From: Mytilus edulis
Taxonomy: Eukaryota
Assembly: GCF_963676685.1 (NCBI RefSeq)
Contig: NC_092352.1
Coordinates: 11,780,001-11,844,000, forward strand
DNA length: 64,000 nucleotides
Reading direction: 5' to 3'
Below, one piece after another: positions 548 to 52,900 of this stretch; the stretch's first letter is position 1; the number at the start of each line of letters is the position of its first letter. A program made the position numbers and the translations under genes. The notes beneath the pieces are model-generated. The model made no database searches. It was not told the DNA's origin and saw nothing but the letters and a program-made list of their open reading frames with translations.

Positions 548-1250
548 CGAAGGATACCAGAGGGAGAGTCAAACTCATAAATCGAAACTTAACTGACAAC
601 ACCATGGCTAAAAATGAAAAAGACAAACAGAAAACCAATTGTGCACATGAAACAACATAGAAAACAAAAGAATAAGCAGCACGAACCCCACCAAAAACTA
701 AGGATGATCACAGGTGCTCCGGAAGGGTAAGCAGATCCTGCTCCACATGTGGCACCCGTCGTGTTGCTTATGTGATAACAAATCCGGTAAATAGTCTAAT
801 TCGGTAACATGTTTGGATTCGAGCGTCACTGATGAGTCTTTTGTAGACGAAACGCGCGTCTGGCGTATATACTAAATTAAGTCATGTTATCTTTGATGAT
901 TTTATTTAATATTATTACAAGATGAAAGAGAGTTAGATTGTATGTACTCTAAAAGTGCTTTAGAATTTTTAAGTATCCACATCTGATTCACGCCACCTCT
1001 AGAATAGGCAGTTTTACAATAACTTTGAAGCCCGTCTTTGATTGGTGATAAAATAGATGTTAATGATTTAGAAAAAGGTTTCGTGGAGACTTGGAAGACC
1101 CAGCAATTTACTGGTGTTTGTAAGGACACTTGTGTAGTTTATGTATCCATCACAGTGATGGAAGATCCAGTTCTTCATCTTTGGTTGAAATTCCAAAGGA
1201 ACATAGAACAGATCTTTGATTGTCGAAGAGTTTCGGATTTAATTTAATGT
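548..1250 (-). mobile_element. Penelope-like (Naiad-type) retroelement remnant: 3' tail 548-806 and RT N-part 905-1250, separated by a hammerhead repeat fragment
   Basis: STKPFSKSLTSILSPIKDGLQSYC..SRGGVNQMWILKNSK; homologous to 7071-8510. Confidence 0.8.
821..866 (+). ncRNA. Minimal type I hammerhead ribozyme, intact core
   Basis: gcgtca-CTGATGA-GTCT(tttgt)AGAC-GAAAC-gcgc-GTC^tggcgt; predicted cut after 860. Confidence 0.85.
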
Positions 1251-7900: not shown

Positions 7901-10900
7901 GTATGAAGTCAGCCTCATAATAATGGAGAAACCAGTCGGCAAGAAAAGGGGCACAATTGGTTCCCATTGGAATGCCGACAGTCTGTTGAAAAGCACGTCC
8001 TCCGAGCGCAATAAACATGTTGTCAATCAAGAAATCCAACATCTTGATAATGTCAGATTAGGAGTTTTTTGTTTGAATCAGAGTGATCCTGTACAAAGGA
8101 GAATTTATCCCTCCATAAGACAAGATACTTGTATATACGTTTTCCATTCTTTATTATGAAACAAAGCAATACCAGCTCTTTCAATTTGTCTTTTAGTTAG
8201 AAATGTGGAATACTTGTGTAAAGTGTAGAAAAGTCAAATGTTTTAATACTATTGCGAGTTGAAAGAGAATTAGATTGTATGTACTCTGAAAGATCTTTGG
8301 ATTTTTTTAGTATCCACATCTGATTCACGCCAACTCTAGAATAGGCAGTTTCACAATAACATTGAAGCCCGGCTTTGGTTGCTGATGAAATAGATGTTAA
8401 TAAGTAAGAAAGAGATTTCGTGGAGCACTTGGAAGACCCAGCAATATATCGTTGTTTGTAAGGACACTTATGTAGTTTAGGTATCCAATACAGTGATGGA
8501 AGTTCCAGTTGCTCTGATTATCCAGGATTTCCACTTTGGTAAGTGTCGTAAGGGTTTATGTTGAGTTTCCAAATGAATTGTTTTAATCTCTAATTTGTTG
8601 ATCAAGCAGTTAATGTGATGAGTTTTACACACAAAAACGAGGATCATGAAATTTAAAAAAAATCGATTCAAATGAAAATGCATACAGATATTTTAGTTGG
8701 TTGCATGACTCTCTTAGTTCGCACTTATTACAATGAATAAGAATAAGTGATCTTTGCATACTGCTTGTCTATGAAAAACCTATAAGGCAAAACGATGAAC
8801 TTCAGATCATTGAGTTTATTATTGTCATAGAATTTTCAAAGTGCATTTCATTAACGATCCTTTTCTATAATACAGACTGTAGAAAATATTTCAGTTAGCT
8901 TTGGCTTAAACTGCATTCTGAAAACAAACATCGAAACAAATTATGTGTTGGCTTCATCTAATGGATCACTAATGAATCAATTGGTAATGGATTGGTATTA
9001 AACTCATATATTGTACAGAAATATTTCGTCGCTCATATCTAAACATTACAAACGGTTATGCTTTTCCTAGACAGCTTATTAAGTTTTCACACTACATTCA
9101 TTATCAGTATGCTGTTTGACATTCAAGTCACTGTTTTTATATTCATGAATTCAAGCAATAGTGATTTACCGACCGTCAATTGTCATAAACTACTCTACAA
9201 TATTTACCCAAACTGAAGTTATCTACACAAAGGAGAGAGAACGTTAGCGAGATTTAAAAACAATGTCATTTAAGTAAAATATTAATTCTAATGAATCCAT
9301 GTATTTGTTCAGTTATACGATTGTCACTTTGTGACAGTTACTTTAGGCAGTCGACTGCATAATCATTAAAAAAGATGAAAATCCATCTGCATTAATTTCA
9401 GTATTTCGATTTTCAAACATAATTTAACATTAATGTTATTTATGCAGTCATTTGTTCATGTGCTTGCTTGAAGTTCATTTTGTAAAATTTGCCAGTAATC
9501 TACAGTTCAGTAAAAAAAATGTTGTGCACATGAAAGAAGACTATTGCCGTTTTACGCGCTCAAGCTTATTCATTTTGTCTTTAAATTGATCTGTGACAGA
9601 GTCGTCTTTTCCTATTTGCATTTCTTTTATAAATCACATATTAACTAGTATTTTAAACAAACTTATACACGTATTGGTATTACTATTGATTTTTTTTCAG
9701 TAAATTAAAAGCAAACTAAATATTCTTGTTCTATACATATACAAGTTTATGAATCTACAATCTATCGATACCTGTATTTTGGCTTTGCATAAGGTTATGC
9801 TTTTCTCTAACTGTTTATGAAGTCTTTACACTAAATCCATTGGATGTTGGATGATAATTGATTGATAATTTGGTCAAAGATGCATGTTTTGATATTGGTT
9901 ATTAGTGGCTTTGAACTAGCTGTCAGTAACTAAGAGTAATCTCAGATCTGTACTGGTGTGTTAAGCCTTTTTCAACTGATTTTTGTTTTAATGTTGCACC
10001 GATGTCTCAGGTTAGAGGGAGGGTTGGGATCCCTTTGACATGTTTAACCCGGCCACATTCTATATGTTTGTGTCTGTTTTAATTCAAGAGCCTGTAATTC
10101 AGTGGTTGTCGTTTGTGGATGTGTTTCATATTTGTTTTTCATTCCTTTTTTGTACATAAATTAGGCCGTTGGTTTCCTCGTTTGAATTGTTTTACATTTG
10201 TTATTTCGAGGGCTTTTATAGCTGACTATGCGGTGTGGGCTTTGCTAATTGTTGAAGGCCGTACCGTGACCTATAGTTTTTAATTGTTTTGTCACTGGTC
10301 TCTTGTTGACAGTTGTCTCATTGGTACTTATACCAAATCGTGGAGTACTTTAATCAATTAAAAGGATAAAACAAAATATTATTGGGTGATTATGAATAAA
10401 ATAAATATGTGCAAATTACGAAAATAAACATATATTTTGTACTTGATTAACCTGCCTTTTTGGTTATTCCTTTTAATCCCCTCATTTGTCATACTCTCCA
10501 TCAGTTTTACACTGTTGACTTTTTTAAGGTATGTGTTCTTGTTGCAATTGAAAAAAGCACAATGAAAGAATCAAATGTTTAAAGTGTTGATTTAATCTTG
10601 TATACATCTAAATTGTTTTAAATTAATTTATTTCGGAAAACTTTAGATGGCGAATTAAATTAGATTTCATAGGTTGAAGTTGGTGTTGCTTAGACTTTAG
10701 TTTTCTATGTTGTGTCTTTTGTACTCTTATTTGTCTGTTTGTCTGTTATTTTTAGCCATGGTGTTGTCAGTTTATTGTCGATCAGCGTGTTTGACTGTCC
10801 CTCTGGTATCTTTCGTCCCACTTTTTATTCAATCATTGCTTAAAAAATTAAACCACATACAGTCAGATGCATTTCAAGTTTTAGAAGGCACTAAATGATC

Positions 10901-13900: not shown

Positions 13901-16900
13901 GGGAGATGTGGTATATCAATTTGACACTACCAATTTCATCAAACGATATGTACTGGAAGAGCAGTGGAACATTTTACCTTATTAGATTCAATTATTATGC
14001 ATATTATTCACATAGGAAAGATTTGCACATTTTGGGACCTTATTCAAATAGAAGTTTCCAGCTGAATTTTTGTGTCAGAGAAAGTAATGACTCGTCTGGA
14101 ATTCAAACAACACAAGGAAATTTCTGTGTGTTCGACATCGGGAAAGGTTGCGCAATTGGTAAGTTTTGAATGCACAAAACTAAACAAGGTAAAGAAATGA
14201 TAAGATTATGTATGGTCAATATAAGAAGGGCTGTATTTATTAATATGATGCAGGCATTACCTGTGGGACGAAGTCTGTATGATTATTTTTTTTCAATTCC
14301 AACATATTAAAACTTTAAAATGTGTTAAAAAAAAAGAAACGGATACACCGTGACGTTTCCGATTTTGGTTCTGTTGTTAGGGATTTTAGTTGTGACGTCA
14401 TACTCGATGTAAACAAAGAAACGATATCATCAGGTAACGTTTTGTTCATATCAAAGAATTATTAAAAATGAAATTGGTATTGAGTTCCTTCCTATAATTA
14501 CTAGACTGATAAATATAAATATATTATTTTTACTCAAAGTCTCACGAAAATGCCACCGGAAAAATGAAGAAGAATTTTGATTTCTGCGTAGATGCGGGAA
14601 TTAAAAAAGTGACAAATAAAAGTTAACGATTTTGAGTTCATTTGTACAATGAAAAATTTTCCCGGTTTTTGTTTTTGTTATTGATTTTTCTACTGTTATA
14701 TTTTATTTTACTACTATTTTTGCAACATTCCAGCAGCACCGGCATACGTATATATCTTCCAATTGATACGACATTCCCATGCTTGTATTTCCTATCATGA
14801 TTTTATTGATAGAGGGTTGCTGTTCACAAGAAAAGTATTCAACCAAGAGTTCCAAATGGTGATGTTGATATCATCCCTTCGTAAATTTTACGGACGATAT
14901 CACTAGTTTGTTGACCGTTATGGAATAACTGTTTCACAAATGATATCGGATATGTTCCTTACGTCTTAAATACCATGCCCTTCCCTTTCATGAATGTGAC
15001 CTACCGAATTAGACTATTTACCGGATTTGTTATCAAATAAGCAACACGACGGGTGCCACTTGTGGAGCAAGATCTGCTTACCCTTCCGAAGCACCTGAGA
15101 TCACACATAGTATTTTGTGTGGTTCGTGTTGTTTAATATTTAGTTTTCTATGTTGTGTCATGTGTACTATTGTTTGTCTGTTTGTCTTTTTAATTTTTAG
15201 CCATGGTGTTGTCAGTTTATTTTTGATTGATGAGTTTGACTGTCCCTCTGGTATCTTTTGTCCCTCTTATTTAGGGTACTTCGTCCCTTTATTATTTTTT
15301 TTCATCTAAAGAAAGAATTATCTTGTAAGTTATGGATGATGTTCTGTCATTATATACATACATTTCACATTAAACTTAAAATAACAAACGTGATTGTTCT
15401 ATTTTTTCGAACTTTCAATTCTCAAAAGTAGTATATCCTTGACCCCTAACCGGAGGGATTGTGCCTGATATTCATATGATGAAGACATAATCTTTCAATC
15501 AGTTTAATTGAGGTCTGGAGCTGGCATGTCAGTTAACTGCTAGTAGTCTGTTGTTATTTATATATTATTGTCATTTTATTTATTTTCTTTTGTTACATCT
15601 TTTTGACATCGGACTCGGACTTCTCTTGAACTGAATGTTAATGTGCGTATTGTTATGTGTTTACTTTTCTACATTGGCTAGAGGTATAGGGGGAGGGTTG
15701 ATATCTCATAAACATGTTTAACCCCGCCGCAATTTTGCGCCTGTCTCAAGTCAGGAGCCTCTTGCCTTTGTTAGTCTTGTATGATTTTTAATTTTAGTTT
15801 CTTGTATATAATTCGGAGTTTAGTATGACGTCCATTATCACTGTACTAGTATACATTTGTTAGGGGCCAGCTGAAGGACACCTACGGGTGCGGGAATTCT
15901 CGCTACATTGAAGACCCATTAGTGGCCTTCAGCTGTTGTCTGCTCTATGGTCGGGTTGTTGTCGCTTGGACACATTCCCCATTTCCTTTCTCAATTTTAT
16001 CCTTGACGTTGACATATCGAAATCAATACGTTACGCTCCTGAATTTTTAAACACTGTACTCACATTAGTAACAGGGTAGTGCTCCAATCAAAGTTACTGG
16101 TCTAATAGTGAAAAAAATATGATTGAAACAAACAGTTAAACAGTTGTATGGCCACCATCACAAACTAGTTGACATATACTCTTCCAAAATGTTTTTGAAA
16201 CCTTTGATCTTGAGATATCAGTAAAATTATCTGACATATATTTAATTAAATCGAATGTATCCAATTCCCCATTTGACATTTTGACTGACAGTGATGAATA
16301 CATAGAAAAATACCCTTACCATGTCGATACAGACGATTTTCTCCGTCTTTCATTTGATGCGATTCCCCTTTTTTGGAACTATGTTTGTCTCTTTTAACCC
16401 TGAATTGGGACAGGCGCAAAATTTCGGCGGGGTTAAACATGTTTATGAGATCTCAACTCTCCCCTATACCTCTAGCCAATGTAGAAAAGTAAACGCATAA
16501 CAATACGCACATTAATACGTTCTCCTATCTATTTGTATTGTAGTCCTGTAATATTATGTTGTCATTTCAATGTTATATTTAACATTGCCATTAAAGTGCG
16601 AGGTTTGGCATGCCACAAAACCAGGTTCAACCCACCATTTTTTCCTTTAAAAATGTCCTGTACCAAGTCAGGAATATGGCCATTGTTATAGTATTGTTCG
16701 TTTCTGTGTGTGTTACATTTTAACGTTGCGTCGTTTGTTTTCTCTTACTTTTGAGTGTAATTTCACATTGCGATAAGACGTGTCACGGTACTTGTCTATC
16801 CCAAATTCATGTATTTGGTTTTTATGTTATATTTGTTACTCTCGTGGGATTTTGTATGATGCTTGGTCCGTTTCTATGTGTGTTAGAATTTAGTGTTGTG

Positions 16901-19900: not shown

Positions 19901-22900
19901 GATCTAAAAAAGCAGGACAAAATATGAAGGATTCGAGTGCTAGTTTTCGAGTTAACAGTCTTTGAAAATTTGGTGGTAAATGATAAGCTTTAGTTTTTTC
20001 ATACATTTAACATTGGCATCTTTTCTCTTCAAATACTATTAAGAAATAACAAGGATTTAATAAATTTTAAACTACATGTTTATCTAATGAAACGAACAGT
20101 AGGATTAGTGGGGAAAATATTGTAAGGCACCACATGCAAAAAAACCACAGGATTCCAGTAATCTGGCAAAATTTTTAAACAAGATAAACGATAATCCTTA
20201 ATATATATGTATGCTTTGTTTATATAAACCGAATCCAAATATTTGAGCGATTATGCAGAACCAAAAAAAAAAATCAAACAATCAAATATTAGCAGCAAAA
20301 CTTTGTCTTCAGTAATGTGAATTCGATATTAACATGGAATTTTATAAAATGACTGATTTGGACAGCCCTAAAATATAAAATTAAAAATAATCATACTTTT
20401 TACTCCAGCATATATATTTTAAATTAGCTATGTTCAGGTGAAATTAAACAGTTCTTTAGCTTAATTTTTTATTTCATTTGTTTTACCATTTTCCTGCACA
20501 TATGATTTCTAATAAATTTAGATAGCTGAGATTACACACATACACTACTACATGACATGTGTGTCACCGAATATAAAAGTGCATTCGAAACACTTTTTTA
20601 ATATGATTTCTATTCCAATTAAAAAGTGACTATGCATCTTTGCAATTACATGCAATATGAAGATGGAAACATTTGATTCATTTTTCTCAATACTTTCTAG
20701 AACTACAGAATCCGTATCCATTATCAGAAGTGTATAGTATTGGAAGGCCAGTATATTCATCGCCATACTTGAAATCATCCAGCAATAACCCGAACTTTGT
20801 AGTCGATGAAGGTAAAGGAAATTCAATTATTAAGAGCATTGCTCTGTAACCGCCAACCAACTCATATAGGCGGGTCGGCACGCAACGTTATTAATTTTCC
20901 AAGAATTGTTCAAAAGTCATTTTTCATTGTATTAATTGTGTAATTAAACACAGTTTGAATAACCAAACATTATATGTCAAGTTTCTAGTCAATTAATGAT
21001 AAAAGAATGAACTGATAGGAGGACGATCAAATTAGTTAATTGGTTGGTGTTGGGCCTTTTAGCAAGAGTTTTTTTTTATAGACAGGATAAACATTTTCAC
21101 TCGTTATCATGGGTTTTGATAACAATGATCATGTTATTGTCCAATAAATTTTAAATTTACAAAATGATAAATAAAGTATCGACAATTGTGTTTGAAGAAA
21201 TAAAGCATTCTTTGACTTTAATCATAATCATATATTAAATTTTTGATTTATATTAGTATGAAAAGTGTTTTTTTTTTTTTAGTTCTCTGTAAATAAGAAT
21301 TTTAATATGATACGCTTCGTATATGCTTTGTATTCAACCTCGTGATAATTTATTTGATAAATCTATACTTAGCGCAGACTCCGAGGCTGTTAAAATCTCC
21401 CATGTTATCCCACATGTATCGTAACGTATGTGTAAACGCTATGTCGATTACTTTGTTTAAAAAATTGTAATTGAAAAAAAACATAACCTTTCTTCTTATT
21501 CTGCGGAATAACAGAAAGAACTAATTCATTAAAGCTCAGAAAAATGTAAAAAGTAAAGATGATTTAAAGATTTATCTAACTGGTTAATAAAACTTTTTAA
21601 AAAAATGTCAATTTTGATAGTAGTGTTATTGGTTGCCATTTCAAACACACGAAAATTTGTCGCAAGTAAACTTGGAAAGTTAAAAATCACGTACACTTAC
21701 ATTTAATAATTAGAATGAGTATATTTAAACCCCTTTTAGAAAAAAATGATACTGATATTTCTTCAAATTGATTTATTTCTCAAGCAAGATACTTTGAAGG
21801 TTTAAAAGAGGGTCGAAAGATACCAGAGGAACAGTCAAACTCATAGATAAGAAATAAACTGACAACGTCACGGCTAAAAATGAAAACGACAAACAGACAA
21901 ACAATATTACACATGACACACCGTAAAAAACTAAAGAATAAGCAACACGAATCCCACCAAAAACTGGGGGTGCTGCCGAAGGGTAAGCAGATTATGCTCC
22001 ACATGTGGCACCCGTCGTGTTGCTAATGTTATTAAAAAATCCGGTAAATAGTCTAATTCGGTAGGTCGCATTCATGAAAGGGACGCGGATTGTAGTTACG
22101 ACGCAAGGAACATATCCGATATCATCAGTGAAACGGTTATGCCATAACAATTAACCAACTCGTGATGGCGTCCGTAACATTTACGAAGGAATGATTTCAA
22201 CTTTACTATTTGGACCTCTTGGTTTCATAGCTTCCTTGTGAGCAGCAACCCTCTATCAAGAAAATTATGATAGGAAATACAAGCACGGGAATATCGTATC
22301 AATTGGGAGATATATACCCCGTATGCAGGTGCTACAGGAAAGTTGCTACTTAGAAATTGAAAGTTCACAATTGGAAAGCTAAAATCACCTCTTTTGTCGT
22401 AAAGTTTTGTTTTCAACCGACCCTCGTTGTCAATTTCTAGATGTAAGTCAAGATATGAGGCCGACTTATTTGCTGTATAAAGTCAGACTCATGATAGTTG
22501 TTACATAAAAAAATCTTATTTGACTTTAGAAATGTATTGTTAGAAAAAGTAATACTTGAATCTAAGTTACAACTTAAGAAACTTCCAAAAATAGCACACA
22601 CAGTAGCATAATCATTTATTGGATTTTAGGAATACTTACCATAAAACAAGAATTTTAAGTATGGTAAATTTATTTGAATGTTGTTTGTATTTCCTCACAG
22701 GCCTTCCAGGAGTGTTTTCGGGAATGTTTTCTACAGTTCTGACAGTAAGACCGTGGATTCAGATTGATCTTCAACAATTTATCAATGTCACTCATATTAT
22801 TTCTCGAGATGAAAGAAGTAAGTCAATTAAACAAAGGAGATTTTTGCATCTATACAATTGTCAAGTGAAAGAGACACCATTAGGCTTCTAACATTGGGAT

Positions 22901-25900: not shown

Positions 25901-28900
25901 CGGAAAAGAAAAAAAAATCATGACAATTACATAACTTTCTACTCAATCTGATATATAACAACAATCCCATTATTTAATCAAACACAACACAAAGTATTTC
26001 CGGTCCCGGAACGTGGAAAAAACTCATCAGTTATTCAATCAGATATATTTAGAGATACGTTCAAAAGCTTTAAGGGAAAGTGGAAAATAAAAAAAATCAG
26101 TTCGAAAATTATCTTGAATAATGGGAGGAAACTAAGATAAAAGCAGGGTTCAGGTTGCTAAGTCTTTAGTTTTCTATGTTGTGTTTTCTGTACTATTATT
26201 TGTCTGTTTGTCTTTTTGTTTTTAGCCATTGCGTTGTCAGTTTATTTTCAATCTATGAGTTTGACTGTCCCTCTGTTATCTTTTGCTCCTCTCATACTGC
26301 ACGATATGTTTGATTTTTGTGAATAAGAAAATGAGGAGGGCGCGATCGTATTTTTGATTCAACAAAAAGCATTTGATAATGCGGATTATTTTACGTCCTT
26401 TCACTAGATAAAGGCAACACTAGTGTACCTCTGTTTTGATAGAGCAAACACAAATCCGGGTCACAAGAAACAATATTTCAACATTACATTAGTTTTCTTT
26501 TGTTAATTTGCTTGACTTTATTGTTCTACTTAAGATAATTCAGGTAGAAAAAACATGACAGAATTTTCTTATAAAATTTCCAAAATGAAGATTTTACAAT
26601 GCTTTAAAAAAAAAATTTTAAGATACGAGTCGTTCAAAATTACCAAAATTTTCTTAGATTGTTCATGAAAAAACCCCACATTTTTGTGCATTAAAAGAGG
26701 TCTACGAAACTTAATTATGAAATCAAGTATAAGAAGATAGGTTTTATAATACATTTTAGTAAAATAAAAAGAAAAATATTATGTCAGCGAACTTGTTATC
26801 TTGCTACAAATAAAACATGAAAATTTCCCTGTATGTCCAGTATAAATTTTGTACTAAAAGAGTTTTCTCCCCTGATATGGTTTCTTAATAAATAAAAAAT
26901 AATTCTAAAAGCACAAATATTTGGAATTTATTTAAACATTTTCGATAATGTAATGAATAACTAAGTTTCCTTTATATAGATAAACAGTATAACCAATAAT
27001 TTTCGAGTCTGTCTCGAAATTTGCAGATTTGGACAACTATCACTTATATAAATAGAAATGTTATCAAAGTGTAGCAATTGTTATGAGATGTTACCAAATT
27101 TAAAAGTTTTTGTTAATGGTGGTAGAAACAAACATGGCAATTAAAATAAAACAGTTGTATTTTTTTTCCTTACAGGTACTTCCAATCAAATTCCGCAGAA
27201 CTTGTATGGAATGTTTGTCAGTATAAATCAATGGGATTTTGTAAACAGAGGAGCTTTAACATGTTTCTTTGGGCTAACGGTGTTTAATTTTCGTTGTCGG
27301 CGTCCAATTACCGGACAGTATGTAACACTTACAGTGGAATATGAACACATGTTTCACCTCAGTGCCTTAACGGATTTGAAAGTCTTTGGTTTTCGTAAGT
27401 TTATACAATGGGACTGTTTATACGTCAAAAAAAAATAATACTGAATTTCAAATAATCGTTATTTACAATGTTTTCAGTTATGGTTGATAGGCTGTTAGAC
27501 AACATGGAGGCGATATTTCTTTTATAAATTGGTGCAGTAACAGTTTTAAGAAAAAAATGCCGATATACTGTGTGAATGTATAATTGTCCGATTCAGTCTT
27601 CTGTTGAAAATCCTATTGAATTATCATAATACCTGTCGACTGTCGTACAGTTTTTACGTCGTAATCGAATTTTACAAAACATGGGTAATATACGTGGCTT
27701 TACAATTTAAAAACAAAATCCTGATCTAACTCGGTTTAATTAGTAAGTCTCGATGATGTCAGCAATAGTTGGCTTTAAAATCATTAACTATTTATCAGCT
27801 TTTAATAACTTCCAGAAAAGGAAATATAAAACTCGCGAGTTCCCAAAAATTGAGAACACAATAACAATCAAAACCAAGGAGTAAACAAAGACTCACAAAA
27901 CCAAAGGACATTTACATCAACAGTTATAAATAATAAATAAGAAACACACGATCTCCACTAAAAACCGGAAGTAAACTCAGGTGCTCCGGAAGGGTAAGCA
28001 TTTCCTGCACCGTAAACGGCACCCGTCGTGTTATTTCTTTGTTAAGTTCGGTAATGATGGAAGGTTATTATGACAGAGGAAGAATATCAGATTTGATTTT
28101 TGACACATTTTCGTCATAATGGCCAATCAGCTCATGATTCATTCATAGCCCTGTCTTAGCAAGTATTCCTCGTTCAACAAAATCAACGTACTGTTAGCTA
28201 GCTCTAGAGTAACGTATCAATTGAGACATATATACTCCATTTGAAGGTGCCGCTTAAATGTTGCTACACAGAAATGGAAAGTTGACTATAGGAAAATTAA
28301 AATCATCGCGTTTGTCATAAATTTTGGTATTTAACCTACCATCAGTAGTCATTTCGAGAAAAAGGTATAAATATGAAGCAGATTTATCTGTGTCGGTAGT
28401 ATCTTAAATTTCAAGTTCACTTGGATATATTAAATGTAAGTGATCACTGAATCTATAAAACCACGGCAAAACCGGACTTATGGTTGATGGTTCAATATTA
28501 ACTATTTCCTAAGTATTATTCATAGTTGTGAAAAAGGAATTGATTTTTACTGTAATAGGATACGTGCTCCTTTGTTTGTTTACCGCACTATATTGTGATG
28601 TGGAAGTGTAATCAAAGCATGATGACATTTAGAAATAAGAAAATGTCCTGGTCATCCGATAATTCGGATTCGAAGGAATCATTTTAATGGAAAGTTTTAA
28701 TAGAAGTCTGTACTGAAAGTGAAAGAAATTGTATGGCTAATCTGCAAATTTGATTTTTCAAGATATTGAAATGAACCACCAACATTTGTCTTACTGAAAA
28801 AAAAACCAACAACACTTATACATGATGTTATATATTGCGTCCTTTTAGCACGGTTTGTCTCTTAACTATTTATCATGTTATTGTTTTTAATCATTATTTC

Positions 28901-31900: not shown

Positions 31901-34900
31901 GATTCAGTGAATATTTTCCTTTAACACTAAACTAATTTCATAATCCCCACAGTGTTCCTCTTCACGGTAATCTACTCTCAATTCACTAAACCATGTCGAA
32001 AACTTGAACTACCATCTTTTCAATGTATCTACTTCTGGTTGACATCGCAGTAAATTTATTTTGTTTTCATTGACTCAGTTTCTTTCCCCTAATTCTTATA
32101 ATAGTTATCAAAGGTACCAGGATTATAATTTAGTACGCCAGACGCGCGTTTCGTCTACATAAGACTCATCAGTGACGCTCATATCAAAATATTTATAAAG
32201 CCAAACAATTACAAAGTTGAAGAGCATTGAGGATCCAAAATTCCAAAAAGTTGTGCCAAATACGGCCAAGGAAATCTATGCCTGGAATAAGAAAATCCTT
32301 AGTTTTTCGAAAAATTTAAACTTTTGTTAACAGGAAATTTATAAAAAAAAATTACCACATTATTGATATTCATGTCAACACCGAAGTGTTGACTACTGGG
32401 CTGGTGATACCCTCGGGGACGAAACGTCCACCAGCAGTGGCATCGACCCAGTTATAAATCTGAATACGTTTTTTACCTCCAAAATAAAAGATCGATGAAA
32501 ATCTTTAGAGTTACCATATACATTCGGAATTCTCTAGTATTATCGAATTCATTCAAATAAGTTTCTGACTTTCTGATTATTTTAATAACAACCATAAATG
32601 TACTTATTTCGGTGAAATTCCAGCTTTAAAAATATATTGATAATGAAAATAATAACCTGGTAATTTTACAGAATCATTTCGTTTTTAAAAAGATAGCATT
32701 CTGCCCACAACCGGAAGTAGATACATTGAAAAGATGGTAGTTCAAGTTTTCGACATGGTTTAGTGAATTGAGAGTAGATAACCGTGAAGAGGAACACTGT
32801 GGGGATTATGAAATTAGTTTAGTGTTAAAGGAAAATATTCACTGAATCGATTCATATAAGGTAGGGATTTTTAGCGTTCAGTTGAAAGGTAGAAAAAGCG
32901 TCCGAAGCGGAGACTGTCGTGACCTAAAAAAAATTTCGTTAGCCACCTTCTTCTATTTATATGGATAGTCGACCTTCCTATGGATAGAAACAAATGCCTG
33001 TGTGTCATAAACCGCATGAAAAGCTTAGTGAATGAACAAAACATCCAGTCGAGTGATGATCAGGGATAGGTTCGGCAAAACATCTGGATACAGAAACTTA
33101 TTGTCTAAACGGAATCAACCGGAAGAACTACCAGTTTACACATTTATACATTCTACTGTATTTTGACAATTTAAGATGTAAAGATGCTCAGTCACGTTTC
33201 TAGAATATTGTGTTTTATTTTTATGAGAATCCAGATTTAGGATAAAATCAATGAATCAAACGAAAATGTATTACTGAGCTCTTTTACGCAAAGAATTAGT
33301 ATTGTAAAAATTATTGACATTGATGAAGGTAATTTGTTCAACTGAAATATTTGTGGACACGATTTGATTATTAGTACCGTTCTGCAGATCTTACGACATT
33401 TATATGTTTTCCCTTGTCGTCGGAGTATCATCTGGTCCGGTACATTTTAAATTTGATGGTCGTTCCTTTTTGTAGACTTTTAGATATATAAAAAAGCACA
33501 TGATTGTGTTTGTGATTCTTATACACAGGTATTAACCTAAATATATATGTACTACATTTTTATGAAAATTCATTTTGTGTTTATGAATACATATTTTTGT
33601 ATGAATAATTTTTACATTATTTTCTTTAAATGTATATGACGCAACAAAGCTGCACAATGTTCTTCGCGCAATACTTACTTATTTGTCATAATTCTAAATC
33701 ATTTTATGGAGTAAACTGTATTAATTATAAATCTTACTTGTATTCGATTAAAGTTTATAATGCATGTATTCATCATTTATGTTTTGTTTCTAAGTCAAAA
33801 CTAGGTAAGAATATTTTGTCAATAATTTAAGTTTGCTGAATCTAAAATTGAATATAAATATTTTCATTTTTTTTAGATTTTCACTGTCAATACCATCCAA
33901 GATGTACACATTCTACAAAAATTTTGGTTTTTGCATGAAATACTTGCAAGATATATAAAGATAAAAGTCATAGAGCCCAGTGACGAAATTGCTTGTTTCA
34001 AAGCAGAATTCATTGGATGCCAAATATATGGTAATACATTTTAAAAAGATTTAAAATTAAACTCATCTCGTACATTTTAAAATATTCTACTATATAATTA
34101 TGTGGACTGCTGAACTTGTGACTTGTACTTTTATTTGTATAAAACAGATTTCGAAAGGAACCCAATAAGACGTAAAACTAGAAACAATGCAAGAAGCAAT
34201 TACATTCATAATTCAAGTAAAAACAGACAACGACATAACACATAAAAACAAACTAAACATTGAGATAGACATACACCTGGAAACAACCTGATTCAATGCT
34301 GACGTTTGTCTTGATACTCCAGCGAATGAACATTGGACGATAAGTTGCTTTCGGAGATTTAACAAATAAGGAAAAGAAGATGTTACAAATTGAACATATT
34401 CATATTTAGAATTCTTGATTTTCAAAGCTTTTAAGCAGAAGCTGTAATCACTTCCGGAAAACACGAATGATACCTCTTGATTTATATTGATAAGTTGTAA
34501 CATTGGTAAACTAGCGTTGCCTTAAGCAAGTTTTCAATGTTGTGTTTAATAGGATGTTTATATGTCTATTCATCTTTTGTTTTCACCTCTGAGTTGACTG
34601 TTTTCTTTGTACGGCTTTTGATTTAATTCCCTCATTAATAAAAATTAATGGGATCACATCTTGTTTTGGTACCAATCTTAAGTTGACGACAAATTAGTAG
34701 TATATATTGAAAAGTTAAAAAAGTAAAAGCGTTGTAAGTTTTCTTTTCGACTCATTTTTTTTGTTTTATTGTTTTGAAAATTTTAGTCAGAACTCTTGAT
34801 AAAGATAAATAACAAAAAGATAAAATAATACATTTCATTAATCAAAGGGAAACTGTATGCAACTCAATTGAATGTCTTTATTGTAAATAAAGGCAACAGT

Positions 34901-43900: not shown

Positions 43901-46900
43901 AAAATGATATACAACACTTTACAATATCAATTTTTATGTTTAAAAATTAATAAGATGAATGTGTCTTGTCCATGATTTTACCAAAGTAACACCAGTAGCG
44001 TGCGACGTTTCACAGCATGTGTAAATTATTCGTGTCAGCTTACGACATAGCTTAAGCGTGGCATTTGATCATTTTTTTTTTAGTTTTAATGTTTTGTCAT
44101 TTGAACTGCATATCTCTGGTCTGAATGTTTCCATTCTCAAATTTATGTATACTTTGCCAGCAATTTTATATAGTCTTTTGCCAGGAGCTGATGTGGCAGG
44201 TATTACTAGATCATAAGATATGTTGATAAAAGGGGAAATTTGTTCCTATTAACTTGCCAATACAATAAGGGGTATTAAGACATCTCAGAAATAAATTCAT
44301 TCAATTGAAATGATATAAATAAATCAGAAATGTCTTCATTTTGTTTTACCTTATAAATATTAAAAATTATTCTTGTCACAATATTGAAAATAATTGTTTG
44401 AGTACAAACAATTTATAATATCTAAATATTAGCATTGTTTTGCTAATTAGATAAAACACATGTAATAGTGGCATTTTCCGTAGGCTGTTTAATTACATAT
44501 TTTAATCTGATTAAATACTGTTTGTTTTACAGCAGTTTTTTTTATTTATTTAATCCATTTGTGAATACCAAATTTGACTAAATGGCTGAGTGCAGTGATT
44601 TAAAATTTTAAATATACGGTTTAAGAAAGATTATTCAACAATGTTTACACATTCATTTTACCATGGATACATGTATTGAGAGATACCAGGATGTACTGAT
44701 AAGGAACTGAAATGAAATTTGAGCTCCCAAAAAATTTAGTTAAATTTTGGAAGTGATTCTGAACGGAGGAGTGGGAAAGTATTCAGTAAAAGGATAATTA
44801 GTTAACATGCAATATTTATTAATCAAAATTTCAATGGTAACGTAAAGAATTTTTGATTTTTTTTTATCAGTGATACCTTCAACTTGACGACATCAACGTA
44901 GCACCCTCGCCAAAGTTTCATAATGTTGAAAAACTGTACATGAAAAATTCTCCCTCTCCCCAGGTCCGAAGGGCCCCGTGTGAGCTTATGGCATCTCTTG
45001 GCGTTAGTCGTCGTCCGTAGTCTGTCGTCGTTGTTAACTATTTCAAAAATCTTCTCCCCTGAAACGACTGGGCTAAATACCTTCAAACTTTAGGGTATCT
45101 AGTTTATAAATTGTATCCGAAGTTTTGATCCGCCAACAAATATGGCCGCCATGGCTAAAAATAGAACAAAGGGATTATATGCAGTTTTTGGTTTATATCT
45201 AAATCTAAAAAAACTCAAGCTTTAAGAGCAAATCCGACATGGGGTAAATTGTTCAATAGGTCAACATCTATCAGCCCTGAAATTTTCAGACGAATCGAAC
45301 AACCCATTGTTGGGTTGCTGCCACTAAATTGGTAGATTTAAGAAAATTTTGCAGTTTAATTGTAATTATCTTGAAAATTATTATAGATAGATATAAACTG
45401 TAATCAGCAATAATGTTCAGCAAAGTAAGATCTACAAAAAATATAATGTGACCAAAACTGTTTATTTACCCCTTAAGGAGTTATTGCCCTTTAAAGACAA
45501 TTTTACACAATTTGTTCATCAAGTTTGCTAATATTGAACAACCCATTGTTGGGATGCTGCTATCAAATTGCTATTAAACAGAAAAAAAGAAAGAAAATTG
45601 TATCTTATAATTTTTTCTACCACAAATATAAAAAGAAAAATCATCAACAAAATACATCAAACATAATAGTATATAATAAAAGATGTAGAACAAAATTCAG
45701 AAGGCATGCATAAAACATTGCGTATGTTAAAAGAATGCCATCTTAAATACCTGTATACTTATGTACTTCAATACACCAACATCACATATAACATAATAAA
45801 ACACGATAGTGTGTGATAAATGTGAACATCAATTCAGAAAAGACAACATATCAACATCGTAAAAATCCGATGAAGAAAAATCTGAAACCGTAATTGTTGA
45901 CATTAAATGGATGATTGGTAATTAGTGATTTTACGATTCCTGCAAGCGATTTCATTTTTCCATTATGCATCACTTTATGATGACATGTTGGTCCGTAGAA
46001 CGGTATAACTTCATAACGAAATTTCGTCTTTATTTTAGATTGTACTACAACATGGGTAAATTTTAAAACAAGTTGTTATAAGGTCTTTTACAATAATCAT
46101 ACGAATCAGCAAAAGGCAGAAATGGAATGTGTTAAAGAAGGTGGACACCTTATCAGTATAAACTCAGGAGAAGAAATGACATTTATTCATCAGTTTTTGT
46201 GTGCAACATATGAAGCAACAGTTGATAACGGGATTTACATTGGCAGGTTTTTTGTTTACAAAAAAATAGATACGCATCAGGACTTTGTGACTCTTTTTGT
46301 TAAATAAAAAAATGTGGTATATTTCCAATAAAATAAAAAAAAAAATAACAACATTATAGTCCAAATTTAAATTCACCGTGCAGTCCACGGCAATAACATT
46401 TAAATGGCATTTAAATTTCAAAGACAGTCCCAATTCAACCGTATAATCAAAAACAATAAACTAACATTTAATATGACAGACAACTACCAAGAATTATCAC
46501 TGGATTACAAGCTTGTGCCTTTGGAAAGCCAAACAAAAAATTGAACGAAAAAAAGTAAATGACAGACAGCTACTAATGGCAACAACACAATATTAATCTT
46601 TGGGTAAATACGTTTTTTTTTTGTGCTCAATCGCAAGGTTACACCCGAGTCACACTAGACTACAATCGCACCACGCTCATCGTGATCTACAATAAATTTA
46701 GATGAAGTCACGGTTTGAGCGGCATGAAAATGTAGATTTTCGTTGTTTTCACGATGCTACTACGTTCTCATTACACTTCTACAACCATATGCTACAATCA
46801 AACGAAATTCTCACCACGCTTATGCTGCGACCTCACCACGAGTATCAGGAGCTGAATACGATCATCACGTTATCACGACGACCATACCAAAGTTGATTCG

Positions 46901-49900
46901 ATAGGAACACGATCTTCTTTTGCGATTATAGCATGCTCTTACTAGAAACATTTTACGATCCTACCACGATCTTTCTACGATTTTACCACGTTAATATCGA
47001 GATCTAACTACGCCCTCATCAATAACATTTACACAATATTTCATATGAATACTGTTCCTTTCCTTCTAATTGTCATTTTAAAATCGTAGAATTCTCGGAA
47101 ACAACACAAGCTTCCCACCAAAATCTACCAGATCTCATGGACGTCGTGTTAGGGATAGTGGTATACTCAGAAAGGCTCTGATACCAATCCTGATCCAGTA
47201 GAGATGTCGAATCAACCAATCCAAGCTCAATAACAACGTACTAGTATTGCAAATCCATTTAGATGAAATGACGATATTTTATTGAACAATTTGAGAATGA
47301 TACAGATGTGTCAAGCATGGTTGAGCTGTTGGGAATTATGGACTTGCGGTCCAAATAACATACAGACAAACAAAACCTGGAGAGCTTTTATATATTCTTT
47401 ATGACAATGAGCACGGCTAGAACTCAAAAATGGTCGTAGTCATATCGTAAGACGAAGGTGATGAGGACGGCACTAGCGTCTTGGTCTTGAACAGCGTTGT
47501 ATAAAGGTGGTATAGTCGTAGGAGAACCGTTGTTGGGTCCCAGGGAGAACGTGATGGTTGTAGTGAGGTCATCGTAACGTCGTTGTGAGATCGTAGCACA
47601 ATCTCTCTGACAAAAATCGCGCATTAAATACGCCCTCCCTTCGATGGTACAGCGATCTTTGAGATCTTACCACGACAATAGTGCGCTATCGCCACGCTTC
47701 TACTACACCCTGGTTTCGCCACGACCGCACCACGATTGTTTTGAAATGTTCAAAGTTGGAGATGCTCATCAAGTTCATGATGACCTCACCACGACCTGAC
47801 TGCGATCTACATAATCGCTTCACGATAGTCTAAATTTTCATAGTGCAATCGTGGCCTTGTGTGACTGCGGTATAAGATTCAAAGTATTCTCGCAAAACAA
47901 TAAAAGAGGGACGAAAGATACCAAAGGGACAGTCAAACTCATAAATCTAAAACAAACTGACAACGCCATGGCTAAAAATGAAAAAGACAAAAAGAAAAAC
48001 TATAGTACACATGACACAACATAGAAAACTAAAGAATAAACAACACGAATAAATCATGGGAAATACTAACATAACTTTCGATTCCTTTAGTTAACTGTTA
48101 TCTGTTTATAAATCTTCTCCGGAAATGAATCAAATGTTATCTAAGTTATGTATAGAATTTAAACAATAAATCTTGTTCACATTTAAAATCAAACTGAAAG
48201 TGTTGGCTTATATTTGAAAAAAAAAGCAACTTGTGAATTACCAATAGTATAAACTAGTCAACAGAACAAGCTTTGATTTGTGATATTGAAATGGTGCTTA
48301 ATGCAAATATTTTAAACTTTATATGCCTCACACATTGTACTAGTATCTATGAAAATTATTAATAACTTTTTTGAAATTTTTGAAAAACTAAGGATTTTCG
48401 CATCCCAGACATAGAATACCTTAACCGTATTTGGCACAACTTTTTGGATCCTCAATGCTTTTAAACTTTTTCTTGTTTGGATTTATAAATATTTTGATAT
48501 GACCGTCACTGATGAGTCTTGTGTAGACGAAACGCGCGTCTGGCGTACTAAATTATAATCCTGGTACCTTTGATAACTTTTTCAGGTTTGGTAAAAAAGA
48601 ATAAAGGTTACAAGTTTTCCGATTACCAATGGTTAAATGGTGAACCCTTAGTTTATACAGCCTGGTAATATACTTCTAATTTCTTTTGTAAAAAAAAGAG
48701 CAATACACACAAATCGTAGATTTAAACAGAAAAAAAATCTACTAAAAGAGGTCTTCTTAAATTTAGAATATTAATTTTAAATTCAACTTCCTGATAAAAA
48801 GTGTTTCTGAAATAAAACGACGAGGTACATACGAAAAAGAAATTTAAACATATATAAACTACCTTAGGCATAGATTACCTTAGCTGTTTTTGGCAAAACT
48901 TTTAGGAATTTTGGTCCTCAATGCTCTTCAACTTCGTACTTTATTTGGCCTTTTTAACTTTTTTGAATTCGAGCGTCACTGATGAGTCTTTTGTAGACGA
49001 AACGCGCGTCTGGCGTTTATACAGAATTTAGTCCTGGTATCTATGATGAGTTTATTTAAACATATAAAGCTACGATTTCTATCTTTTCTGTGTATTATCT
49101 TATATGAAACTAAAGGACTCGTAAGGTGAAGAGTCTTTAAAAATAAGTCAATACAATAATAAACTAGAAGAGACACTAGGTAATTCGTTAATAATGTTGT
49201 TTTTTCATTGCATTTTACAATTTAAATGTTCAGCTTTTATCTGTATCTCTATGTTATATATTCTATTTACATCAAATATTAGTATGAACGCACTAATACC
49301 ATCTTTATTAATCAAAAGAGATAATGGAAGATGTGGTATGAGTGACAATGAGACAACTCTCCACTCAAGTAAAAATTTATAAAGGTAAACCATTATAGAT
49401 CAAAGTACGGCCTACTTAATTTACTGACCACGGGAAGAGTTAGCTTCAGATGAAATATATCGTTAAAAACGTTAAGAGGCCGTGCTTTCATTTCTTTTTT
49501 TTTATAGTACATATTGTTTTATGGCTTTCGAACAGAACACAAAATGGTACCTCATTAGTTTAATCGGCTTGATTATATTTATATTATAGCACTATGCCTC
49601 TGTATGAAAGTTATAAAATAAAACAGGTATGTATAATATAAGTTTTTTTATTCTTTCTTATGCTATGAAAATCTTTTATAAGACTACAAATCTTCTATCA
49701 TACACATAGCTAAGTAATGATTTATTCGTTATAAGGTTCAATAACTTGAAAGAATGGAAGATTCAACCGGATGGTTTTGACGACGAACAATGTACAGCAA
49801 TCATACTGAACAGTATCCACAATAAATTGAGCTGGCATGATGTTCCATGTGCTTATAACAAGATACACTATTTTATGTGTGAGACACAACTGGATACCCA

Positions 49901-52900
49901 TAACAGTCAAGGTATATTTCTAGAATTAAAGTTTTAAAACTAATATAAAAAACTATCTCAAGCATAATTCTTTGAAATATTAATTTAACACAACAACAAA
50001 AATTACAGTAGCAATCAATCAAAGCAGAATAAAAAAAAAGTCTTTTGTATTTTGGATAACAAAAAAATCCATTTGGTCCTCAACGCTCTTCAACTTTGTA
50101 CTATATTTGGCCATTTGCCCATTTTTTTTATTTGTGTCACTGATGAGTGTTTTGTAGACGAAAAGCACGTCTAGCGCCAATATAAAATTTCAATCCTAAT
50201 ATCTATAAATGTTCAAATTTCTTAAATCCATAAATCCATAAATCCATATAGAAAATAAGAATCAAGGTAAACATATAAATCGAGAGAATCGCACGAAATT
50301 CAAAAAGTTGTAAGAATTGTACATCAATAGAACAAACCTTCTAATACATATGTATCTTACGCCATACGGTTCCACATCAATAAATACAGGGAATAGGATA
50401 AAATCTAGAATCAACTAACCAGACTACTATTCAGGTATGTTATGATCTAAGAACGTTTAAACATGTCGCTTATGAACAAAAAAACAGACACACATCTAGT
50501 GTGTCCATTACGCGCAATTAATGTCGGTTTCAGTAGGTCTTCCTTTCAAAACTATTGAATATTATATGGGGAGGGTTTGACGCAAGCAAACACGTTTCAC
50601 TTATCTGTATAGCTCGTTCTTATGCTGTACTGTATGTATGTGCCTGTTTCAAGTCAGAAGCCAGTAATTCAGGGGTTTTCTTTGCTTACTCGATTACATA
50701 TTTGTTTTTCGCTTATGAACCAAAAAACAGACACACATCTAGTGTGTCCATTACGCGTAATTAATGTCGGTTACAGTAGGTCTTCCTTTTAAAACTATTG
50801 AATATTATATGGGGAGGGTTTGACGCAAGCAACCACATTTCACTGATCTGTATAGTTCGTTCTTATGCTGTACTGTATGTATGTGCCTGTTTCAAGCCAG
50901 TAGCCAGTAATTCAGGGGTTTTCTTTGCTTACTCGATTACATATTTGTTTTTCGTTCAATGTTTTGTTTCGGCTGTGGTTTTTCTCGTTAGAATTGTTAA
51001 AAATTTGTCGCAGTGGATCATTTTATAGCTGAATATGCGTAATGGGCTTTGTTCATTGTTGAAGGCCGTACGATAACATATAGTTGTTAATTTCTGTGTC
51101 ATTTGGTCTCTTTGGAAGAGAAATAATACCGCATATTCGTTTTTTAGATTAACGCCCGGAAATTGTGTATGTTTCTATACATAAATCTAATTTAGTTGAA
51201 TGGTTTTATATTTGTCATCTTCTGCTGTATAGTTAAATATATAATGATAACATGTCATACCAACTTTCTTTTGACCTAATAATATATATATACCAACCCT
51301 GAAATTGAATTTCAAGAGATAAACTTTTTTTCTGTTTCAGTGACAGATTTAAGAAAAATTTTACGTGGCAATAAAGGAATATCAAGTCATAACCAATCCT
51401 TATTTACATGTGGAAATGGCGAGGTTATATCACAGCTAGCAGTTTGTGATACTTATAATGATTGTTCTGACAGGTCTGACGAACAAAAATGTGGTACGAA
51501 ATATTTTCCGTATCAATTTCAAAGTAAAACATGAGATACTAGAATTCCCAATATCCTTTTGTAATAAAAAAATAAAGATTTTACAAATATAACAACCACT
51601 TGAATTGTTTTGTTAAATTAAGGTTAAAACAAGAAACCTGAATATAAAAAAAGTTATGTATTCATGGTACATTCTATTGCTTATAATACCAACCAAATAA
51701 CTTAACTGCAAACTTAAGTTCTTGAAAAGATCGCTGCTTGTTAAGAACAAAAAAGATAGGAATGTTTAGAAAAAATTGATAAACCACAGGATAAAAAATA
51801 CATGTAAGTAATTAAAAAAAATCTTTTGAAGTCAAGAAATTACTCTAATCATTGACATAGGCCATAAAAGAAAGCTTCACATAATCTTTCGTTTCTATGA
51901 ATTTTTTCAAAAGGACCCTTTACTAATTAAAGTTATTTAAAGTATAACGTTATTTTTATGGTGATTTTCTTAAATAAAGCAAAGGTGTAAACCAACGAAT
52001 GATAAATATCTTAACCGAAGTATTGTTTTAATTTTAGATATTTCACTAATTTCCTTTCAGTACGCAGTAGATTTTGCATGTATTCTACAAGATGTAAAAA
52101 TAACAATGTGAACTGTCAACATTGATCAAACTATATTTTGAATTTAAAAACAAAAACAGTTATAAATATTTTATTACAAATAAGTATATCGGTGTTATGT
52201 AACCATGGTTGATTTATATTGATCTTTCGGTTATGTAGATTTAGTTAGAGCATGCGAAAATCTATAGCATTTACCCTGTATTTGATTAATTTTGTGTTTC
52301 AATTTGGAACATGAGTCACAGATAAAAATTTCTTATACGACAATTATATGTCGTATTTGAAAGATCAAAGTAAAGCAGTATTATTTGATACATACAGGGA
52401 TCTGTAAATTATTAAGTTTTGTTTTGCTCTCATTAATATCTTTAATATGTCTATTGCTTTGTTTCATTTACAATTTGATTTTTATATGAATTAAAGAATC
52501 TGTTCACTTATATAAAACGCTTCGAATCGGAGTAAATAAAATTCTATTCGCTTTAGCAAAATCAACAATGCAGTTATTGAAATTTTCCATAGTACAGGTT
52601 AGTAAACCAGTTATATACGCCTGCCAATGTTATGCAGTTGGTACTTTTTTATGTATCATTAATAAGAGAAAATTAACTATCAATACAAAACTATGTTTAT
52701 TTGTCTAATAATCACGGAATTTTATTCGGCATCATTCGTGGCAATCTGTATTCGCCTGTATATTTTCATATTGTAGCCGTAATCGTATGTAGTAGTTCTT
52801 GTATATCCGTGACAGTTTTTGAACATGCGCAAACCAAAGTGCAGAGAAGTGGAAAACTTAATTAGCGATCCTCCTCATTAAAAAAATGTTTCATTTGTAC

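Follow-up and report, generated by a model that had tools for sequence, protein, structure and literature searches.

The best-described relative of the sequences reported here is the retrozyme of the mussel Mytilus galloprovincialis, for which about 5000 type I hammerhead ribozymes were found in two families (A and B) of 350-390-bp repeats (Cervera & de la Pena 2020; PMC7229834). These mussel retrozymes are expressed as abundant circular RNAs, and the supplement of that study gives a cloned genomic unit, Mg353 ('Rtz Genom mussel Mg353'), together with the consensus of cloned circles; the single hammerhead of Mg353 was cleaved during in vitro transcription at about 0.1 per min, and RtcB ligase circularised such hammerhead-cut RNAs in vitro (PMC7229834). 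A retrozyme of this kind is probably a non-autonomous retroelement copied by Penelope-like elements. In this work we describe two copies of it in a 64-kb window of the Mytilus edulis genome (contig NC_092352.1, positions 11,780,001 to 11,844,000; AT-rich, with 31% GC), and all coordinates below are positions in that window. Copy A, the upstream retrozyme, and copy B, the downstream one, lie on either side of exon 17, a 79-nucleotide (nt) exon of a lectin-domain gene, and each carries an intact hammerhead motif on the sense strand of that gene. The locus resembles the M. galloprovincialis system in the repeat family and the hammerhead, in the identity of B to Mg353 over 49 nt, and in the presence of a 363-nt tandem unit in the genome; it differs in that the copies here are solo and 5'-truncated and that host DNA with an exon, not retrozyme, lies between the cut sites. 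It is likely that A and B are two passenger insertions of this known and very abundant retrozyme, with hammerheads that may cut a minority of the pre-mRNAs.

Other described systems share particular features with this arrangement. In the double hammerheads of newt satellite 2 (Forster 1988, as cited in PMC4209133), of axolotl retrozymes and of the minimal hammerhead ribozymes (min-HHRs) of Penelope-like elements, as at this locus, helix III is short, its loop is palindromic, and neighbouring motifs can share an extended helix III. However, the newt and axolotl motifs cut poorly alone, whereas the mussel motif, with a 2-bp helix III and a tetraloop, cuts alone at the rate given above, and the Penelope min-HHRs, obligate dimers that reside in terminal repeats, have a long bulged helix II, no or only a vestigial helix III and loop 3, and almost no activity (PMC4209133; PMC7229834). 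The canonical metazoan type I hammerhead has a helix II of 4 bp and a helix III of 1-2 bp with a palindromic loop, and is said to work best as a dimer (PMC4209133). The hepatitis delta virus-like ribozyme of CPEB3 and the engineered intronic hammerheads (Dye 2006 and Fong 2009, as cited in PMC2995048) are likewise sense-strand intronic self-cleaving RNAs whose cleavage races with splicing. The ribozyme of CPEB3, which cuts with a half-life of 2-3 min, shows conservation at its locus and is separated by about 10 kb from the next exon (PMC10919898), in contrast to the pair described here, which is specific to one gene copy, unconserved, only 45 nt from a splice acceptor, and made up of two ribozymes flanking an exon. 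Finally, engineered circular RNAs with flanking ribozymes (tandem twister, as mentioned in PMC7229834) also place a cargo between two self-cleaving ribozymes, with ends joined by the cell's tRNA ligase, but these constructs are designed, with fast ribozymes and ligation stems, whereas the layout at this locus is a chance one with a hypothetical product.

Table 1. Features at and around exon 17 (positions in the 64-kb window)
Feature	Position	Strand	Evidence
Exon 16, preceding lectin exon	46039-46242	+	Pfam Lectin_C E 9e-4; lectin profile 7-71, rank 1
Lectin profile rank 1 (segment; exon 16)	46017-46304	+	profile positions 7-71
Retrozyme copy A, solo, 5'-truncated	48344-48577	+	blastn, unit alignment, paralogue comparison
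Hammerhead A, type I	48503-48546	+	Rfam RF00163 31.2 bits, E 4e-5; sequence; helix count
Hypothetical RNA between predicted cuts, 470 nt	48541-49010	+	arithmetic from sequence and Rfam matches
Lectin profile rank 3 (segment; exon 17)	48552-48665	+	profile positions 73-94
Exon 17, 79 nt, middle piece of C-type lectin domain (..LVKKNKGYKFSDYQWLNGEPLVYTAW)	48586-48664	+	splice sites in 5 paralogues; lectin profile
Target-site duplication of B, 5' copy (ATTTAAACATATATAAA)	48842-48858	.	read from sequence and paralogue comparison
Retrozyme copy B, solo, 5'-truncated, Mg353-type subfamily	48859-49057	+	identity to dispersed copies, L014 empty site, Mg353 match
Hammerhead B, type I	48973-49016	+	Rfam RF00163 32.5 bits, E 1.6e-5; 49-nt identity to tested Mg353 hammerhead
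Lectin profile rank 2 (segment; exon 18)	49710-49934	+	profile positions 91-138
Exon 18, following lectin exon, joined to exon 17 as TG/G	49736-49911	+	profile 91-138, E 9.5e-4, rank 2

Identity and origin of the two retrozyme copies

Judged by sequence, A and B are copies of the published Mytilus retrozyme, which is of the type without long terminal repeats (non-LTR). Copy B is letter-identical to the published construct Mg353 from TTCGAGCG, the 5' strand of helix I, through the ribozyme to TGGCGT, and both copies are homologous to the 350-390-nt AT-rich hammerhead unit. Elsewhere in the genome the same repeat forms head-to-tail arrays with a 363-bp period, with five units in array L010 and more than 20 on contig 10. 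A full unit has four parts. Its tail follows the cut site and has ...TTGATAAC as its end; next come a GC-rich segment (about 105 nt) and a poly-T of variable length, and finally an AT-rich body ending in the hammerhead. Both loop-2 variants, UAUGU and UUUGU, are present in this genome's units. A retrozyme in tandem comprises at least two units, the monomer being excised between two hammerheads, whereas the locus holds two solo, truncated copies from different subfamilies with host DNA between them. An earlier note on this DNA had called the two motifs minimal type I hammerheads of Penelope-like elements, which is the wrong class: helix II has 4 bp and no bulge, helix III has 2 bp and a GCGC tetraloop, and the motifs sit in a retrozyme unit, not in a Penelope terminal repeat. 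They are canonical type I hammerheads of the Mytilus retrozyme.

The two insertions arose independently. A and B are 77% identical to each other (blastn in the window) and have different closest relatives: A falls among copies with a common 8-nt deletion and the loop UAUGU/UGUGU and reaches 88-93% identity to its best genomic relatives, and many dispersed Mg353-type copies match B at 95-97% identity. In the paralogous gene L014, 10 nt take the place of the 222 nt that hold copy B, which is an empty site. On either side of B, at 48842-48858 and 49054-49068, stands a target-site duplication (about 15-17 bp), ATTTAAACATATA(TA)AA, the two copies of which differ by one TA. Upstream of exon 17, similarity to the paralogues stops at 48578-48582 in all five (L014-L018); as this is where copy A ends, A is specific to this gene copy as well, and both retrozymes are absent from all five paralogous genes. 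The A-B divergence, the differing relatives, the empty site and the duplication of B thus bear out the earlier proposal of independent insertions from two subfamilies. On these comparisons, B is the younger insertion, because of its high identity to other copies, its target-site duplication and the empty L014 site, and A is the older one. For A no target-site duplication could be defined, and its 5' edge is uncertain (48344-48374); its 3' edge is sharp at ...TTGATAAC and lies 8 nt (TTTTTCAG) before the exon 17 acceptor. Both copies stop at the normal 3' end of the family, just before the GC-rich segment, and are without the 5' part of the unit, A being without both the GC-rich segment and the poly-T; they look like 5'-truncated retro-insertions. 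Unlike the intronic regulatory ribozymes of CPEB3 and amniote HH9/HH10, which keep a conserved position, neither ribozyme is conserved in position across the five paralogues.

The hammerhead motifs of both copies are intact. Each contains, in this order, CUGAUGA, a 4-bp helix II (GUCU/AGAC), GAAA, the palindrome ACGCGCGU and a cleavable C17, with the A15.1-U16.1 closing pair in place. In hammerhead A, CUGAUGA is at 48509-48515, helix II at 48516-48519/48525-48528, the palindrome at 48532-48539 and C17 at 48540; in hammerhead B, CUGAUGA is at 48979-48985, the palindrome at 49002-49009 and C17 at 49010. The cuts are predicted directly after 48540 and 49010. The three helices have the type I layout, in which helix I is the open one and the other two are closed. 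Both motifs have 4 bp in helix II and 2 bp with a GCGC loop in helix III. Helix I comprises 8 bp in B and 5 bp in A, where it carries one G-to-C change relative to the nearest relatives. The Rfam model RF00163 (Hammerhead_1) aligns over its full length (model 1-45) to both motifs, with E values taken from a 3-kb search, at scores that narrowly miss the gathering score of 34 bits (A 31.2 bits, B 32.5 bits); for this reason, a scan of the whole window at the gathering level listed nothing. The sequence and the Rfam alignment therefore agree with the earlier note on two intact cores that flank exon 17 with cut sites 470 nt apart. When the 1.37-Gb assembly was searched with a 32-nt core pattern containing two free loop positions, 12,735 exact copies were found, compared with 0 for the reversed pattern used as a control, which shows that the motif is not due to chance. 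The description of the motifs as "dimer-type" holds in part: the short palindromic helix III permits a double hammerhead, but the identical hammerhead of Mg353 cuts as a single copy. Since B is identical over 49 nt to this single, cleaving hammerhead, dimer formation is possible but not required for cleavage.

The window contains further members of the family. Repeat copies were found by blastn, and A was further aligned to the 363-nt unit and to its nearest copies. The retrozyme-related repeat (about 200-250 bp) occurs 11 times in the window, 7 times on the plus strand and 4 times on the minus strand, suggesting that the sense strand of the gene is not avoided there. Four other sense-strand copies (4158, 19438, 50134 and 58652) are defective in core or helix, as had been stated earlier, but a fifth plus-strand copy with a perfect core at 829-860 had been overlooked. 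This copy (829-874, plus strand) and one at 32127-32172 (minus strand; core 32141-32172) are the further copies with intact cores. In L010 (1380-1500, and in every 363-nt unit), the GC-rich segment of about 105 nt is followed by 12-34 T, the number of T differing between neighbouring units. Several solo copies in the window begin right after the poly-T, and shorter ones, including copy B, begin further in; the GC-rich segment is missing from all solo copies of the window, and the 3' end ...TTGATAAC is common to arrays and solo copies. Two heptamers occur in the tail of copy A: UACUAAA, about 34 nt upstream of the exon 17 acceptor, and UGAUAAC, about 9 nt upstream of it.

Exon 17 and its host gene

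Comparison with the paralogues indicates that exon 17 is a real exon under purifying selection. Its sequence, its acceptor AG/G and its donor TG/GT are kept in all five paralogues (L014-L018), which have also retained portions of the adjoining introns. Identity to L014 is 93.7% in exon 17 and 71% in the flanking intron; the exon differs by four synonymous changes and by one that is non-synonymous and conservative, and exon 18 is likewise 93.7% identical to that of L014. Purifying selection on exon 17 suggests that the exon is still used.

On the basis of its domain matches, the host is a CUB/C-type-lectin/low-density-lipoprotein (LDL)-receptor-A gene, with A in intron 16 and B in intron 17. 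Among the plus-strand exons, Pfam identified one CUB domain (E 1e-9), four LDL-receptor class A domains (E 1e-7 to 1e-10) and one weak Lectin_C domain (exon 16); exons 17 and 18, submitted to Pfam singly, gave no match. Instead of Pfam, a home-made lectin profile, built from 125 lectin domains of the multi-lectin proteins that the exon 16 peptide matched, was used and run on the 2126 stop-free six-frame segments of the window. The three top-ranking segments correspond to exons 16, 18 and 17 (Table 1), and because they are collinear with and adjacent in the profile, one lectin domain is split over three exons, of which exon 17 is the middle. The exon 16 peptide matched multi-lectin proteins among protein representatives at about 30-40% identity, together with short open frames that run into intron sequence, as would result from prediction on unspliced DNA; a search for homologous proteins, the length window of which left out long proteins, returned two fragments of this latter kind. 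Since 79 is not a multiple of 3, the earlier claim that loss of exon 17 would shift the reading frame holds.

Several other features of the gene and of its introns were observed. Intron 16 apparently uses a GC donor at 46243 (G/GCAGGT), as required by the reading frame: with the canonical GT at 46247, two bases are left over and a stop would be met in exon 17, and splicing at 46243 gives ..IYIG-LVKK.., a WIGL-like motif. The sequence G/GCAKGT and the same start of exon 17 are kept in all six family members compared (the window gene and L030-L034). The gene family is small: contig 9 holds a cluster of four members in a stretch of about 310 kb (11.58-11.89 Mb), and contig 12 holds two (37.79-37.86 Mb). 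Intron 16 measures about 1.1 kb in one paralogue and about 0.5 kb in another; here it is about 2.3 kb long and has thus been expanded in this gene. Upstream of A, intron 16 also holds a dispersed repeat of about 150 bp (47900-48050), the copies of which are 83-92% identical and found on both strands, the others being at 548-685, 7063-7215, 10680-10825, 15123-15268, 21803-21952 and 26154-26292. In upstream introns, reverse-transcriptase-like open frames (..FSYIDDVLSL..) at 7641-8057 and 22228-22482, both on the minus strand, are probably decayed retrotransposons.

Cleavage, splicing and alternative readings

According to the reading of A and B as passengers, two unrelated retrozyme insertions entered introns 16 and 17, each as a single 5'-truncated copy, and the hammerheads would be intact because B is young and A happens to carry only two harmless changes, not because the host maintains them. 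No sign of selection on the ribozyme of A was found when its hammerhead was compared with the rest of the copy: relative to its relatives, 2-3 of 44 positions differ in the hammerhead and 12-23 of about 160 in the rest of A (Fisher p 0.12-1.0), and the hammerhead is thus no better preserved. In the pre-mRNA, each hammerhead would probably cut slowly, on a scale of minutes (a rate of 0.1 per min implies a half-life of about 7 min), either alone or aided by pairing of the palindromes, while the exon 17 acceptor, 45 nt past cut site A, could allow spliceosome assembly to begin seconds after synthesis of the ribozyme. From these kinetics we infer that spliceosome assembly starts long before cleavage in most transcripts, and we likewise infer the lack of a role for the two ribozymes. 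Because the acceptor is only 45 nt beyond cut site A and cleavage is slow, splicing would be expected to win in most transcripts, with the 470-nt exon fragment as at most a rare by-product. According to the account in PMC2995048 of Dye 2006 and of work from the Bentley laboratory, an intron cut co-transcriptionally by a hammerhead was spliced as well as an intact intron, and only a fast ribozyme aborted splicing. In Xenopus, 42-44% of retrozyme copies overlap introns, with only mild depletion (10.64898/2026.07.22.740005).

Several observations weigh against passengers without a role. Among the first 100 cores listed (10.3 Mb), same-strand neighbours were 336-368 nt apart, as in tandem units, with one pair at 145 nt and all others more than 1.4 kb apart; no other same-strand pair with a spacing of 380-1400 nt was seen among these, so that the arrangement is rare. 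The two palindromes pair strongly in the thermodynamic fold of 48450-49060 (predicted probability 0.82-0.99). Furthermore, the same hammerhead works in vivo on array transcripts, as the abundance of mussel retrozyme circles indicates (PMC7229834), and an intronic ribozyme, that of CPEB3, can lower mRNA output (PMC10919898). The arrangement is rare, yet it is explicable without selection: given that 1.37 Gb hold about 12,700 cores, many of which belong to arrays, we estimate that about 15-50 independent same-strand core pairs within 1 kb would occur genome-wide by chance, and that about one of these would enclose a complete sense exon.

The alternative that survives best is that the hammerheads act as a pair, as the earlier note had proposed. 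In this case they would pair via ACGCGCGU, cut at 48540 and 49010 and free a 470-nt RNA containing exon 17, consisting in order of the tail of A, 8 nt, exon 17, 194 nt of intron 17, and B up to its cut site; this RNA might become circular and perhaps be reverse-transcribed, and its release would compete with splicing and lower the amount of in-frame mRNA. The mechanism was attached to the wrong ribozyme class, but a same-strand pair of intact cores 470 nt apart does mimic a retrozyme dimer, with a spacing near that of the natural 363-nt unit. The pairing of the two helix III palindromes that had been suggested is thermodynamically plausible in the fold given above. However, nested folding cannot represent a double hammerhead in cis, which is a kissing arrangement with 104 crossing pairs, and the predicted pairing is therefore evidence of an attraction between the palindromes and of no more; in the same nested fold, A loses its helix II. 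Closure of the circle would restore a retrozyme-like junction between the tail of A and the body of B. In mussel tissues natural units do undergo cutting and circularisation, and the ends produced by a hammerhead cut would be of the type that RtcB circularised in published work (PMC7229834). Short-palindrome canonical type I hammerheads are, moreover, described as working best as dimers (PMC4209133). On the other hand, the identical hammerhead cuts alone and needs no dimer, its cleavage is slow relative to the 45 nt from cut site A to the acceptor, slow intronic hammerheads do not block splicing in the experiments recounted in PMC2995048, helix I of A is weakened to 5 bp, and both copies are without the GC-rich segment of the unit. 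When the 470-nt piece was folded as a circle, no excess stability over shuffled sequence was found (z = +0.97). The genome contains no retro-copies of the host stretch 48578-48868, which matches only the five paralogous genes; in four of these five the next exon also matches, and L014 shares intron blocks too, so the paralogues look like DNA-level duplicates and not like retro-copies. We therefore regard release of the exon by the pair as unlikely. Somewhat less likely still is that a fraction of the pre-mRNA is cut by both hammerheads before splicing and the 470-nt piece circularised by tRNA ligase, and the chance that an exon-bearing RNA, linear or circular, would be detectable is similarly low.

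A more conventional effect of insertion A would be a displacement, by about 230 nt, of the original branch point along with most of the polypyrimidine tract; the tail of the retrozyme would now supply the branch point, and inclusion of exon 17 would perhaps be weaker. Copy A ends just 8 nt before the acceptor, where the paralogues have a longer T-rich tract, and the heptamers in its tail, UACUAAA (48546-48552) and UGAUAAC (48571-48577), are branch-point-like; exon 17 probably now relies for its branch point on the inserted element, at a position 10 nt beyond the predicted cut of the ribozyme. However, pyrimidines still make up about 72% of positions -20 to -3, compared with about 83% in L014, and the purifying selection on exon 17 points to its continued use, which leaves a weakened exon as the chief consequence of the insertion distinctly improbable. 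Least credible of all, and hardly worth entertaining, is a complete absence of cleavage in this context, the motifs being look-alikes or inactive ribozymes: their scores just under the Rfam gathering cut-off, the helix I mismatch in A, and local minimum-energy nearest-neighbour folds that differ from the hammerhead fold (-11.7 vs -4.7 and -15.8 vs -8.4 kcal/mol) could be cited for it, but all core positions are intact and B is identical to a hammerhead that cleaves in vitro and that has the same predicted competing fold (PMC7229834).

Significance of the locus

The retrozyme family itself is already known, and the locus is a neat natural experiment within it. If the exon were indeed excised by the pair, the locus would provide the first example in nature of a circular RNA that is made by ribozymes and carries a host exon. 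It would also offer a conceivable route of exon shuffling by retrozymes, since the circle would in principle be a template with which the machinery of retrozymes or Penelope-like elements could move the exon. With A and B read as passengers, what the locus chiefly demonstrates is that a conserved gene tolerates retrozyme hammerheads of intact sequence on its sense strand, even 45 nt from a splice acceptor, and it provides a convenient natural substrate for following the race between hammerhead cleavage and splicing in a mollusc.

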